Below are positions 20,227 to 29,200 of a stretch of 64,000 bases of DNA, in pieces (position 1 is the first letter of the stretch; every line of letters begins with the position of its first letter). The translations under genes and the position numbers were made by a program. Below the pieces are notes generated by a model that saw nothing but the letters and a program-made list of their open reading frames with translations, was not told the origin of the DNA and did not search any database. The stretch covers positions 16,616,001 through 16,680,000 of the forward strand of contig NC_087257.1 in NCBI RefSeq assembly GCF_037042905.1. Reading direction: 5' to 3'. This stretch comes from Lytechinus pictus (lineage: Eukaryota).

Positions 20227-23200
20227 CTGAAGAAAAAAGAGAAGAGAGTTAATGAGATTTCTGTTACTCTCTCACTCATCAAATTCTAATCTCTTAGTTT
20301 ATCAAAACCATGGACTTAGTGCACCTTTTTCTTCTCTCATTCACTATTTCTGTTTGATGCTGTCAGCAGCTACTATCCCAGATATTTTGGCACAGAACAC
20401 GTAACCTAGCTTAGGATTGAAAATTATTTATCACAAAGATACCCATGTAATATTTAACTTAAATACCTCAGCAATGTATTTATTTCCACATTTCCCCATG
20501 AAAAAAAATGTTAATCTCTCTTTAAAGAAATCATGTTAAATTGTATGATTTGAAGATATATTCCTTGAAAAAAAGAATTGGGCTCTTTACAAACTGAATG
20601 TAAATAAAATTTCTTTCTTATCGTCTGAAACAAAAATAGAATTATTTCAAGAAAATGGCTCAAAGATTAAGTGGCATGAATACATACATGAATACCATTT
20701 TGTAATTTGTACTATTACTGCCATACTCACCATGTTAATTTGATAGTGCTTGACCTTCTGGTTGTGGCTAAATGAGAGGACGAATGCTCCGGGGATCCGT
20801 TGACTCTCCCGAATCAGGAACATGCCATCGACCATACCTTGCTTGGCAAAGAGGGCGTGTGTCTCCTCCCGCGTCAGTCCGCTGTGAAACCACGGCTGTG
20901 TCATGTGAATACCTGTCATGAAGGGAACCAAGAAAATAGTATTAATAATAATCTGCTTTTTAGACAGCATGAGAAAAGAAGAAGTCTTGTATGTGCTTTT
21001 ACTCTTTAGAAAGCCAAAGGAATTACAGCTATATCTTTGTTTGAGTGGCAACAGCAGCATGCTAACAGTTAAAATAATTGCCTTCTTCAGACAATTGTGG
21101 CTCACCAGCAAACAATTTTTTCTGCTCCCTGGATGGTAAACGATTTAAATCATGATTTAAATCGCGATTTAAATCACTTGATTTTTTTCAAAAAAATCAC
21201 TGATTTAAATCAACTTTTATGAAAAAAATTAGTTTTCTCTATTTTCTCTTCTTCTTAACAGATACTTTCAATGTAATCATTTTCATTTCTGTTCCACATG
21301 CCTTAGAGATACTTTAAAAGAATGATACACCCTCATGGAGTCTGATTTAACACCACTGTTTTATTTTCAAATTGTAAAACAAGCAAAACTGATGAAAACA
21401 ACAAGTTTCTAACGAAGTAATGATAAATAACTCTCTGTATGTACACCAAACTGTTAAATCTTCAATAAAATAATATATATAAAAAAGTACCAAATGGGGT
21501 CTGATTTTCTTCCAGACATGATGCTTATTAATGCATCACAAAAGCTGCAAAACCCTTTGTTTATTAGCTATTACCAGCTGTTAGTTGGGAAGTCCCCCAT
21601 GTGATAGTTCTAGGAAATATTCCTAGCTAAAATCCCCCATGTGATAATTCTAGGAAATATTCCCAGCTAGAATTCCCAAGGGCAGTATAGGAACCCTAAC
21701 AGGCCTTTAATAATGTCAATTTTGTTGGAAATTCTCAAGTTCTTTGAGTACTTCATGCATTGGAGTAACACTTCGGATGTTTTGAACTGACTGATATAAA
21801 CATTTCAAGAGTTTAAATGTATACATAATACATAACATTACTTGGGCTTCCATAAAATGTCCCTCTCTATAATGCAAATAAATATAAAAAAAAATAAAAA
21901 AAATTACCTGTATATAAGTGGATTATTGTGTCAAATAGTACAATACACAATGTTCAAAAGACTACTTGACCACTATTATTGGTGTAAAACAGTTTAAATA
22001 TAGTTTAAAACTTGTTAAGTGTGATCATTATTTTTCGTTGGAAAAAAATCTGATTTAAATCATAAAAATCCGATTTGAATAAAAAAAATCCGATTTTTTT
22101 TTTTTTTTTTTTTAATAAAAAAAATCAACAACCCTGTTCAAAACTTGGTTTAGCAAACAGCCGTCTTTAATGATCAACAGCCTATGAAAATCAATTTCAT
22201 CTATCCCTTGATTACGACTTCTTCTGTCCCGTACACCTATTACTTTTAACCAATTTACCCCCACCCAAGGGCATTAATTACCCCTATTTGCTCACCTGAG
22301 TTGATACCACCACCCTTCAGGCCACATAACTGGTATTATGATGACCCCACCCAAAACATTCATACCCCTATGCTTTGCTCACCCGAGTTGATACCACCCC
22401 TCCTGCACGCCCCACAACTGGCGTAATGATGACCACACCCAAACCATTCATTACCCCCTATTTGTACTCACCTGAGTTGATACCGCCCCGCCTGCACGCC
22501 CCAGGACTGGTGTTATGATGACTACGAGGGCTGGGGTTGTTGTGCCTGGGGCTACTCGATAGCTGGGAGTGGGGGCTGTTGGAGCCCCCGGACGATGGAG
22601 GGAAATTGAAACGGGGGCTGCTGGTCGTCACCCGAGGACTAATGAGTGGACTATCGAGGGACCGCTGACCGCCTCGTCTCTGCAAAAATTAAATTAAATA
22701 AAAAACAAAACAACGTTAATTCTTCAGTTTTTATATAAAAGTATGCCCCTCCCCACCAAAACCTAAAATGAACGGTGAAAATAGAGATGAGATGATGTAT
22801 AGGGACTCTTTTCCATATCTGCTACAGTGAGGAAACAATAAAGAGATAGTTAAAAGAAGGAGCAACTTATCCACATTAAATAATGAGGAATAAAAGGAGA
22901 GAGGAAGAATTGAAGGATGAATGAATAAACAAAAAAAAGAAGAATGGATAGAAAATTAATGAATGAATAAAGAATGGATGGAAGAATCAGTGAGTGAATG
23001 ACTTAACAATGTGATGGGATTTCTTTTTCAAAATGTGAAATAAATGAAATGAGTTTTGTGTGAAAAAAAATGAATGGATGGAGGAATGTATGAAAGGATG
23101 AATAATGAATGAATGCATGAAGGAATGTTGAATGAGTGAATTGAAGTATATGTCACAGGATAAGTGAAATATTAAAAAATAATAATAAAGGACAGATCAA

Positions 23201-26200
23201 AAGGCACAAGAAACACCTGCAGCACGTATCAAGACAAAATGAAAAGAAATATTTTGTTATACCATTGCGATTTCAGGCTTGCTGGGATTATAATTACATG
23301 TACATTTAGCTATCGCTCAAACCACATGCGTCTCACATGATGTTCTACTTTCTCACAATAACAATCCATGGTGTATACCAAACCTTTATAGAAATGATAA
23401 ATATTTTCAACCATGTTTTCAAAACAGACTATCATCTTACTCTGCGATTCATACAATGAAGTGCAACACCCTGCAAGACTTGCTTTGAATCATAAGAACA
23501 GATAATCTAGCATCTACCGCTATCTGGGATAACTAGGAAAAGTAGAACGTGTGAAAGGGAAGGGAATCCTAAAACAGGATGTTTTATGAAGCATAATCAA
23601 GAGTTGCACTTTAGGAATACCATATTTGGCAAGAGAAACAATGCTCGACAAACTTAGCCATCCATTGAAAATTCTGCCGGAAGTACAACAGATATCATCA
23701 ATGATGCAGGAAGAAGTGAAATATTGATTTGAAATGAATCCAGAGTGAACCATTGTTAGATGGCAATGTTTGTTATACACCTAAGTGTATTTATAAATAT
23801 TTTTGTCAGAAATGAACTTTCCTTTTCCCAACACCGAGGCTAAATGGAAACTGATTGCACCCAAAGAAACATAATATTATGTGTGCACATCTTCCCCCTG
23901 TATTCCAATAAATATGATTTTTTTTCTCCAACTTTTCTTCACTTTTTTTAACAGTCCTTCTCTCCTTTCTGGTATTCCTCCTCCCCCATTTTATTCTTCT
24001 CCTTCTTCCTTCTCTTGCACTTTCCTTCACATTCTCCCTCCTTCCCTTCTCTCTTCTCATCCTCTCACTTCCTTCTCAATTCTTCTTTATTCATCCTCCA
24101 TTTCCTTTTCTTATTCTTCCTCCTCCTTCCTCTCCCCCTTTCCTCCTCCCTTATTCTCATCCTACCCTATCCCTCTCCTCTTCCCTCACTTCCTCCATCT
24201 TCCCCCATTTTTTAAAGCTACACAAAGACGGTTGGCGATTTCAAGTTCAGTGTTGACCTTTTGGTATTGGGGTTCCATCAATTTTTACACGATTATAACA
24301 CCAGACATAAAATGAAGATGGTCCCGAAAAGTCACTCACTAGTTGTTGAGATGTCAATAATGTGATCTGGATCAGTTTTACAAACTCTGAATAAGTTTTG
24401 GAGCTAGAGGAAGCAATCAAAATTTCAACATCAACACCAAGGCCAACACCGGACTTGAAATCACCCAATATGGCAATGAAAAGGAATCTTACCCTCCAGT
24501 TGAACTCCTCTTGCCTTGCAATGGCTATGGCTTCACTAGGATTGTCAATGACCCGTCCTTGAGTTCCAGAGAAATCCATTGCTACACGGTCTGAACAGTT
24601 CTTCATGTTCTGAATGCAAAGACAGGAAGACGATGGTCAATGGTCAGTCACCAATGGTCAGTATGATAGTTAGAAGATGATCAAGCTGTATTCATGAGTA
24701 ATGACCTAACGTTCAATGCCATATTGTCGAGGGCAAATTTCCCTTCTATTCCAGAATTAATATGAGAGAGAGAGAGCATATATTTTTGCAAAGGCGGCAC
24801 TACACTAGCATCTAGATATTATACAGCCCTCCAGAACTATTATAGTCAAGGAGAAATCCAAAGAACATACTAGGAAAATGCAGATATCTTTTTCAATATT
24901 TCCTTATTTCTTCCTGGTCAGCTGACACTGACAAAATCCTTATCACTCCAAACCAAAAACAATTTCACAACCCAAATCAGAAACCTTTACATCAGGTCAA
25001 AGAACAAAACGGCATTTAAATCCCCCCCCCCCCCAATCTGCATCCTCACATCACCCCAACCCATTATAGGCACTATGACAACCCTAACCGTAACGCTAAA
25101 TCTTCAGGAAATTACACCAGAGCTACAGCGTATTCTTGAAAGGGTAAAAAGGGTGAATTATTGGGTCACAGAAAACTAACTCCCCCGAAGGACATACCTG
25201 CAATAAGACTTCCTGGCATTCTTCCCTCGTCTTGATGGTTCGCTCTAGCGCCCTCTGGTAGTTCTCAAGGAGCTGTTCACCATGCTTGAAGAGTCTCAGG
25301 GCAGCCAGCCAGCACTGCCGCGTCTTCTCGTCCTCCGCACACATTAACCTCAGATCCTTTGCACTGAATTTAGAGTTCTTGGTCTGCGAGAGGCGGGAAG
25401 GGTGGGGATGAACAAAAAAAATCCAGGATGAGTTTAGGTCCATGATGGAATCCGATGAGTTAATTAAATTGAATGGTTGATTTGGACAAGGCCTGTATTA
25501 ATTCAAACTGCACCTAACTTGCACCTTGGTTGAGTGAACCCTAAGCTTTAAGTATTTTCAGAACATTCTTTGAAGCTCTCACTACGATCATCCTTCTATA
25601 TTGAATGAAATACATCTACTTGTGTGGGTTATTGTTGCTTGATTCTGACAAGTTTTCTATATCATATTAAAACTTAAGATTTGCTTTTTCAAGATTTAAA
25701 AAAAAATCTCAAAATTCATTTTGGCCAACTAATTGATGGGTTTGACGATGATGGTCACAAATTGAAAGATTCATTCTTCCAAAGTCAGAATGTTCTGCAT
25801 ATCCCCATGGTTGCTCTTTGGTACAACATATATCCATATTTCCACTCTGAGGCCCACTCCATAAAAACTTATCATGGGAACTTTTCCATTATGGAAACTA
25901 ACATGGAAACCTTGATTGCAATTGGCTGATCAGCCAAGTCACCATGGTAGTTACCATCATGGTTAAGTTTCATAATTGGAAGTCTTTTATGAAACCGGCC
26001 CCGTAGTAAAATACTGCCCTCGCTCACTCACCTTGGTACAGAACATGAACTCGGTGGGTGCGTGGTATTTCTTCTTGGGGTTCAACGCCCTGTAGATTTC
26101 AATGTTACTCAATTGCACAAAGTGGTTCAGGTGTCTTGGGTCCTAGAAAGAGAACACACATTAAACGGTTTAAAAAGCTGCAATTGATCTACAGAAAGCA

Positions 26201-29200
26201 GGTAACACCATAATTCATCTAGAATGCACATAGGCACAGTCTCTCCGCAAACGAAAAAAGCACATTCATTGAATTCCCTTTGGCAGAGTAGTACAATATT
26301 GATTTCCTGAAAGTCGATCAACTTTGGATCAGAAAATATTACCAGACCAGGTACTAACGGACGGACAGAACTTTACAGCAGAACAGACTGGAACAATCTC
26401 CCTTTGGAGGAGAAGTACAGTCCTGAATCCCTGAATAGCAGACCATAAACTAACTGGAGACCAGAAAATATAAGACCAGGAACTACTTCAGGATCAGGAG
26501 CAAGATCCAAGAGAGGACCAAGCAATTACCTTGAAATTCCGTTTGGAGGAGTAGTAAAGTTCCGATTTCCAGATAGCAGAACGAATTTGGATCAGATAAC
26601 ATGACATGACCAGGTACTAAGGAACAGGAACAATATCTTACAACTTCCTTTGGACGAGTAGTAGTACAGTCCAAATTCCCTGAGAGCAGATCAGGAACTA
26701 ACTTGGGACCAGAAATAATAACAAGACAAGGTACTATTAGAGGGACAGAAACTTTTAGAGGACTAGAAGAATCACCTTCAAACTCCATTTGGAGGAGTGG
26801 CATATTCCCCATTCCCTGATAGCAGCTAGATCAGGAACTTATTTGGGACCAGAAATGATAACAAGACCAGGTACTACTATGGGGACAGGAACTTAAAATG
26901 CGATAAAACAATTACCTTAGAACTCCCTTTGGAGGAGTAGTACAGTCCAGATTCCCTGAGGACGCAGAAGTATTTCTTCCAGGATCGTTTGTGGCCTTCC
27001 CTGATATGAAGCCAGCCCTGGATCTCTGGTAGAGTCTCCACTGGACTAAGCATGTCCTGAAGGAAGAGATCAATATCAGCATTAAAACTTGAGGGTGCAA
27101 CTTAGAATTAAAAACAAAACAGTGTGTAAACCATCAGACCACATGCTTCTGTACACCTACAAGGTATAAAATATACTTTCTCGGACCAAAAATATGTTGA
27201 AATAGTCGGATTCCTACTTTGATCTAAAAAAAAGTGACATCCCTAAGAACTAAAAAAAAAACATATGTATGACAAATGCCAACTTATAGACTTTGTGCAT
27301 CATCACCTCCACCACAATCATCATCCTCAATTTAANNNNNNNNNNNNNNNNNNNNNNNNNNNNNNNNNNNNNNNNNNNNNNNNNNNNNNNNNNNNNNNNN
27401 NNNNNNNNNNNNNNNNNNNNNNNNNNNNNNNNNNNNNNNNNNNNNNNNNNNNNNNNNNNNNNNNNATTATTTTCATTCTTTATGTCCAGAGTTAAACACT
27501 AAATTTCATGCGTTTATGAAAATTCCTTGAGTGAATAGAAAGAAACACTATATTTCTCTTTTCTACTGCAAGATGTCTCCATAATAAAGAAATTTCCATG
27601 AATAATCATTATTGCCACCTTCGCGAGGATTGATAACCCTAAAGAATTACATTATAAAGAAACAAGATCACCCTGGAAAACAACACATGGATAGATTACA
27701 CGTACGTCTTGGACGGCCATCTATTTTAAACTCGCTTGTTTTTCCCTTTCAAGCAAATCAATACTAGGAATTCTAAATCTCACATGGGAAAATAAGATCA
27801 GAAATAGCAGCATCTAATGGAGTAGTAGAACAAACCGGCTCGTATGACGATGTAAAATTCATTCTCGTCGATAATTGCCAGGAAGATGCCACTGGGCGAC
27901 GGGCCTCCTCGGGAGACGCGCTTCCTGCGTCGGGTGAACCGCAACGAGGCCATGCACCACATAATAAAACACATCACACCAGAATTCAACTATTATCATA
28001 TCTAAAAACAGACCATTTCTCTCCCCCATTTGGAGAAACACTCACCAGTATTAATGGCGGTCGGGGCCTCTTCGGCTTCTCAAATAAATTATCGGCCGTC
28101 TCGCTTGGGTCCGCTACCATGTGCGCTGGGAAGAATTGCTGCAGGCGAAAGGAAATGAAAGCGACAAGTGTTTGAGACATTATTGGCACATTTGCAAATA
28201 CCAATCGACAACGCTGTGGAGTGTTTTCACTCCGAGCTTCGTCTCTGCTTTTAAAAGACAGATAAGTCTTTCCCCTTCCTGTTTTTCCTCTTTTCCTCAA
28301 CTTCACTAAATATTTCTAAAGTGAAAAACCTCTGCAAACAATACTTACTACCTCATACTGTACAGCTTATAAGGAAGATAGACAAAATAAATTAGACATT
28401 GTTTAGGTTTTTGAATTAAATACAATATTTCATGTTCATTATTTCAAAGGGTCGGTCGGATAAGAGATGAAGAAAGACTGGGGCATACAAGGGACCCCTG
28501 CTGTGGTTCATAATGGTTTCGTTTTTCCCCCGACAGCACTGTGCTCATATTGCATTAATAAATTTGAGCATTGTGCCTTTACACAATCGGGAAGGGAATG
28601 GACTTCGGAGAAAAGAAATCGGGCTTTATGGCTGGAGGGATGCAGGGCGGTTTGTATTACAAATCAATCATTGTTTCATTGTCAGGTACAATCTGGACCC
28701 AGTAACATGAAGCCAAACAATTGATTGCGAGGCTGACATTTACAGTTGATCATACACAATAATCAATGCAATCAATCGTAGAAGTCAGTCATAGAATCAA
28801 TCGCAAATCTTCACTTTACAGGGTCCCGACTGCTATGGGATTCTCTTTAATTCCAAGACCCTGCGAAGGCTGCTTCCTCCGGGCAAAACCAAGGAAAGGA
28901 TAAAAGAAACGGGGTAATATCCCTGAAAATGATACAGTCATTTCAGGACATGTTACAGAGTTTGACGGATGAATGCTACAATAGATGATCAAAACTACCA
29001 ATACAAAGACTGGTTTGACTTCAGAATATGGTTTCCATGCCTTTCTTATTCAACAAATACCAGGCATATCCTTGTTTTTGATAATTTGAGGCAAGATTTT
29101 CAGGGGAAACCATTCAATCTTCATGAATTGCTGAAAATAATGATCATGGTGGGCAAAGCCATATTTTCTTTTATATAAAACTTACCCTAAGGTTAAAAAT

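Follow-up and report, generated by a model that had tools for sequence, protein, structure and literature searches.

More than half of a 773-nt intron in the GRB14-like adaptor gene of the sea urchin Lytechinus pictus consists of tandem copies of the gene's own upstream exon-intron boundary. The explanation that we regard as highly probable is that these copies are an old, decaying minisatellite whose first monomer lies across the boundary, and that the intron was lengthened passively, without any regulatory role. The array occurs in both Lytechinus species compared and is absent from two more distant urchins, its units are orthologous between the species and diverge as much as neighbouring introns do, its spare donors turn over, and the contigs of four RNA runs contain the canonical junction only.

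The window, by which we mean the whole 64-kb stretch of L. pictus DNA that was analysed, holds a minus-strand gene of 13 exons that runs from 50709 to 20098. In a tblastn search against the window, several exons were 100% identical to L. pictus XP_054767822.1 (P0271), and relatives of the gene product, which have RA, PH, BPS and SH2 domains, are named growth factor receptor-bound protein 14-like. On these matches, the gene is identified as the L. pictus GRB14-like adaptor. The focal exon (27056-26916, Table 1) is covered by P0271 in tblastn, and its product gave phmmer matches to the PH domains of GRB7/10/14. RNA joints from four runs place the intron that follows it at 26915-26143, with GT..AG ends; the real donor reads AAG/GTAATT at 26915 (GT at 26915-26914). 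A run of 130 N is located at 27336-27465, just upstream of the focal exon's intron.

Within the intron, we recognized five spare tandem units, each 60-139 nt long, all of which come from a 140-nt founder unit (u0) formed by the end of the exon, the real donor and the start of the intron. Five further copies of a 22-nt exon-end core, each with 2-3 mismatches, lie in the intron (at 26802, 26663, 26556, 26417 and 26293); measured onward from the copy in the exon at 26942, successive cores are spaced by 140, 139, 107, 139 and 124 nt. The spare copies amount to about 569 nt (74% of the intron), or about 658 nt (85%) together with the founder's intron part. The original prediction, that the intron is mostly made of decayed copies of the exon end and its donor, was thus right in substance and in the number of copies; its figures of about 640 nt of copies, a unit of 120-140 nt and an exon share of about 45 nt are replaced by those given here, the last unit being partial and the exon share being about 51 nt. 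TRF, proposed at the outset as a check, did return a 140-nt period at 26629-26968, which is the youngest part of the array. BLAST of the founder unit against the 64-kb window matched the array copies with E values from 6e-29 to 4e-5 and found no copy elsewhere in the window. An origin from a dispersed repeat or transposon was rejected on the latter result, together with an RNA depth of zero over the array in three runs. That the intron contains a structured or known RNA was likewise rejected, as no Rfam match was obtained for 21800-27300 at E<=0.1.

Table 1. Coordinates of the exons, repeat units and second array in the window.
Feature	Position	Strand	Length	Identity to u0	Description	Evidence
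PH-domain coding exon (focal exon)	26916..27056	-	47 codons		phase 0 at both ends	RNA contig ends in 4 runs
Founder u0	26827..26966	-	140 nt		last 51 nt of exon, real donor and first 89 nt of intron	unit alignment
Spare u1	26688..26826	-	139 nt	76%	donor AAG/GTGATT, GT at 26775-26774	
Spare u2	26581..26687	-	107 nt	74%	internal deletion; donor dead, AAG/ATATTG, AT at 26636	
Spare u3	26442..26580	-	139 nt	71%	donor AAG/GTAATT, GT at 26529-26528	
Spare u4	26318..26441	-	124 nt	68%	donor region deleted	
Spare u5	26258..26317	-	~60 nt	56%	partial; exon-derived part only, donor lost	
Intron tail without repeat	26143..26257	-			polypyrimidine tract and acceptor, AG at 26144-26143	
Next PH-domain exon	26032..26142	-	37 codons			RNA joints, tblastn
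Second boundary-spanning array	22258..22523	-			three 89-nt units	TRF, sequence

Two of the spare units retain a GT donor, and that of u3 is the same 9-mer as the real donor. Both sites (26775 and 26529) score 8 of 9 against the donor consensus, as does the real donor, and apart from it they are the only consensus-grade donors in the intron. The spare donors of the three other units are dead. This inventory agrees with the original prediction, which had listed the two surviving donors, the single change of GT to AT and the two complete losses; it was also correct that reading through the real donor gives 12 codons and then a stop. An acceptor-like CAG/G, inherited from the exon interior, heads u1, u2, u4 and u5, and u1 is the only unit that has both such a site and a GT donor, the donor lying 40 nt later. 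Upstream of the acceptor-like sites, the polypyrimidine content is modest (55-70%).

The use of these sites was assessed with Logan contigs from four runs, two each from two organisms, which were aligned to 21800-27300; judged by exon differences, the organisms are L. pictus and L. variegatus. The joint 26916/26142 was present in all four runs, and the upstream-most donor is the only donor seen used in these contigs, where rare isoforms are not visible. No joints from the donors at 26775 or 26529, or from pseudo-exons, were found in the contigs of the four runs, which drop rare variants. Run X23 also carries unspliced sequence, among it an 830-nt contig that covers 26115-26944 without differences from the window, and this provides an independent confirmation of the array. 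Two further intronic regions of the gene drew attention by their RNA depth. At 24237-24467, word depth was at least 10^4 in all four runs, with many short contigs and divergent loose ends; the region had no Rfam match and looks like a dispersed, heavily transcribed repeat, perhaps SINE-like. At 25848-26031, where the intron that follows exon 26142-26032 begins, depth was 250-500 in all runs versus 40-90 over exons, and this is probably another dispersed repeat.

The orthologous loci compared were two of L. variegatus (L001 and L002), one of Strongylocentrotus purpuratus (L003) and one of Diadema setosum (L004), and all of them agree in their exon boundaries. In L. variegatus, the introns measure 777 and 771 nt, and both loci have six units that stand in the same order and align unit by unit. 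A single core copy is present in the 414-nt intron of S. purpuratus and in the 2360-nt intron of Diadema, and each window unit matches these two species only at the exon-intron boundary. The most parsimonious interpretation is that the intron is ancestral and that the array was born in the Lytechinus lineage before the split of L. pictus and L. variegatus. Two losses could in principle also explain why S. purpuratus and Diadema lack it. TRF at its default score misses both arrays of L. variegatus, which are revealed by alignment alone; consequently, censuses based on TRF will undercount old arrays.

On a single chromosome record, CM031027.1, L001 lies at 22.08 Mb and L002 at 15.83 Mb, 6 Mb apart. 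Both are annotated with one and the same GRB14-like protein of 724 aa, and their introns are 96-99% identical; the pair is either the product of a recent segmental duplication or a haplotype left uncollapsed in the assembly. The differences between them are mostly indels within the array, with 86 gapped positions in the array intron versus 29 and 8 in control introns. In S. purpuratus, a large early intron of the gene (L003, 5314-7216) contains a purely intronic minisatellite of 1.9 kb, with a 45-nt unit and about 42 copies. In urchin genes, introns often contain large arrays, also away from splice sites.

In a tree of the units, every window unit had its L. variegatus counterpart as partner, and the S. 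purpuratus copy stood apart from a group of all Lytechinus units. From the pairing across species it follows that the array is older than the species split and that its units have since escaped homogenisation. For the same reason, concerted evolution or gene conversion preserving the spare donors found no support; identity to the exon is somewhat higher for the window u2 (88%) than for the u2 of L. variegatus (79-81%), but the number of differing sites is too small for interpretation. The units u2 and u4, and likewise u3 and u5, paired together in the tree and have derived characters common to each pair in the alignment, which points to the duplication of a two-unit block. Units u1 and u3 retain a motif of the intron start that is common to S. 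purpuratus and has since been lost in the Lytechinus founder; this indicates that the boundary in its ancestral form gave rise to the spare copies, rather than the other way round.

The exon-derived parts of the spare units differ from the exon, which is under constraint, by 12-31%, and the real exon differs from that of S. purpuratus by 10%. The introns of the two Lytechinus species differ by 11-14%, a divergence accumulated along two lineages. A difference of 12-31% gathered in a single lineage, set against 11-14% over two, suggests that the array is several times older than the split of L. pictus and L. variegatus, which should be read as a rough relative age.

Constraint on the array was tested by comparing the window with L. 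variegatus. The real exon end is 98-100% identical between the species and the founder's intron part 88-90%. In the spare units, the exon-derived parts are 88.7% identical and the intron-derived parts 88%, values that lie beside those of the non-repeat intron tail (83-86%) and of two neighbouring control introns (86-90%). The spare units thus evolve at the neutral intron rate. The donors themselves turn over: the window's u1 GT reads AT at both loci of L. variegatus, where the acceptor context of u1 is also altered; L. variegatus u5 has gained a new AAG/GTAATT by a single substitution, a few bases upstream of the lost donor; and u2 of L002 includes an extra donor-bearing piece that is missing from the window and L001. 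The GT of u3 is the only spare donor GT common to both species, and its retention is unremarkable at 88% per-site identity.

These observations are best explained by the following sequence of events. Once the Lytechinus and Strongylocentrotus lineages had parted, a segment of 140 nt spanning the boundary would have been duplicated in tandem in the former, and unequal exchange would have produced six units, with one step copying a two-unit block. The spliceosome presumably takes the upstream-most donor, which is the sole one joined to a complete exon; all downstream copies would then be removed as intron, and the duplications would be tolerated. The spare copies would subsequently drift as neutral intron DNA, with donors lost, kept or created at random, and the ancestral intron would have been passively lengthened from about 200 nt to 773 nt, about fourfold. 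Donor-anchored growth, one of the two readings offered in the original prediction, holds as a description of passive growth: about 570 nt appear to have been gained by tandem duplication across the boundary, but the copying of a two-unit block implies that the process was not strictly anchored at the donor. The origin of a new intron by duplication was rejected, because the intron is ancestral and occupies the same position in S. purpuratus and Diadema.

The same gene contains a second boundary-spanning array, at 22523-22258, whose unit joins the final ~51 nt of exon 22679-22470 to a GTGAG donor and about 38 nt of intron. This is a Ser/Pro-rich linker exon, and the intron part of the units is G-rich. 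The GTGAG is intact in all three units, and RNA pieces stop at 22470, the first donor of the array. The array is present but restructured in L. variegatus and is represented by a single copy in S. purpuratus and Diadema; it is independent of the focal array and restricted to Lytechinus. Two independent, Lytechinus-only arrays across donors of one gene could mean more than chance and tolerance, and they are what speaks for a mutational bias of this genus, in which tandem duplications favour 5' splice sites, for example by replication slippage linked to transcription or to U1. We consider it improbable that such a bias is at work, although it is the best placed of the alternatives, and the same low likelihood attaches to the broader proposal that Lytechinus makes or retains tandem duplications across 5' splice sites above the rate of ordinary introns and that both GRB14-like arrays are its products. 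Given the focal array, the chance that one of three other arrays of period at least 25 in the 32.8-kb gene spans one of the 12 donors is about 0.27, which is our own estimate from the TRF arrays, in a window chosen for its first array.

The other reading offered in the original prediction was that the array consists of decoy donors, the spare 5' splice sites recruiting U1 or being used at a low level, so that NMD, triggered by the stop 13 codons beyond the real donor, tunes the output of the GRB14-like gene. The equal consensus match of two spare sites and the real donor would suit such a role, as would the in-frame stop that any use of a spare donor would include, and proximal pseudo-sites are used in human 6-16 and CBS (PMC1557585). 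However, none of the four RNA assemblies has a joint from a spare donor, the substitution rate is the same as in control introns, three of the five spare donors have already decayed, the u1 donor has no counterpart in L. variegatus, and further donor-like sites differ between the species. The 773-nt intron also contains no AATAAA or ATTAAA that U1 could suppress, which makes a U1 shield against premature polyadenylation unlikely as well. Two points can be held against the neutral-minisatellite explanation here: low-level use of spare donors, with products degraded by NMD, could escape assembled contigs, and the 9-mer of u3 is the same as that of the real donor, with its GT kept in both species. 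Taken together, the neutral rate, the donor turnover and the exclusively canonical junction in the contigs give no support to tuning by NMD or U1, and we judge the decoy function to be somewhat less probable still than a mutational bias.

It is very unlikely that the units act as cassette pseudo-exons, spliced in as frame-shifting poison micro-exons. The acceptor-like sites at the head of four units, and the GT donor that u1 adds, speak in its favour; but no matching joints occur in the RNA contigs, only u1 has both sites, its L. variegatus counterpart is without the GT and has a changed acceptor context, and the polypyrimidine content upstream is modest. Mis-assembly, to which tandem repeats are sometimes subject, has nothing specific in its favour and is barely conceivable, since the same units stand at two loci of an independent L. 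variegatus assembly and the contig of run X23 shows no differences.

The neutral-minisatellite explanation places the array in a known class. Minisatellites with a boundary-spanning first monomer have been described in human F7, 6-16, CBS, LAMIN B2 (LMNB2) and PDGF (Borensztajn et al., 2006, PMC1557585). They include F7 IVS7 with a repeat of 37 bp, LAMIN B2 with 10-15 repeats of 100 bp, PDGF intron 4 with a repeat of 81 bp, CBS IVS13 and the interferon-inducible 6-16 gene, and in F7, LAMIN B2 and PDGF the authentic upstream-most donor alone is used (PMC1557585). The urchin array is a decayed member of this class, of the F7 IVS7 type: its tandem, head-to-tail repeats have a first monomer that begins in the exon and spans the boundary, they carry the donor and reiterate it along the intron, and, as in F7, LAMIN B2 and PDGF, the upstream-most donor is the only one that appears in mRNA, as seen in contigs. 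The urchin unit of 107-140 nt is near the sizes in LAMIN B2 and PDGF. Unlike a young VNTR with near-identical repeats, the urchin array is old, with units 56-76% identical to the founder and 3/5 donors dead, and it is fixed across two species. Furthermore, the exon part is 51 nt versus 4 nt in F7, and the host is an echinoderm, whereas the F7-type examples are human.

Two other systems resemble the array in part. As in intron gain by AGGT duplication (potato RdRp, PMC4974935), an intragenic tandem duplication was absorbed by splicing and added intron sequence. In that process, however, a new intron arises from a duplicated exon and is missing from relatives without the duplication, whereas the urchin intron is ancestral, is present in S. 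purpuratus and Diadema and was merely lengthened. With the decoy or poison sites of regulated unproductive splicing, the array has in common consensus-grade intronic donors whose use would give a premature stop. The regulated cases have splice sites conserved among related species and detectable junctions; in the two sister Lytechinus species, the sites have turned over, and the contigs contain no such junction.

Overall, the array taken alone matters little, being a tolerated by-product of tandem duplication. Its value is modest and lies in being a dated, cross-species example: two Lytechinus species have the array fixed, and two outgroups lack it. What it illustrates is the late fate of a splice-donor minisatellite, in which the copies decay neutrally, pseudo-donors are lost and gained at random, and the first donor is still used. 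If Lytechinus does have an excess of duplications at donors, this would point to mutation being coupled to transcription or to the use of splice sites, and the arrays would form an age series for the choice by the spliceosome of the first of many donors. Were such an excess of arrays at donors confirmed, L. pictus would lend itself well to studies of 5' splice-site choice and intron growth.
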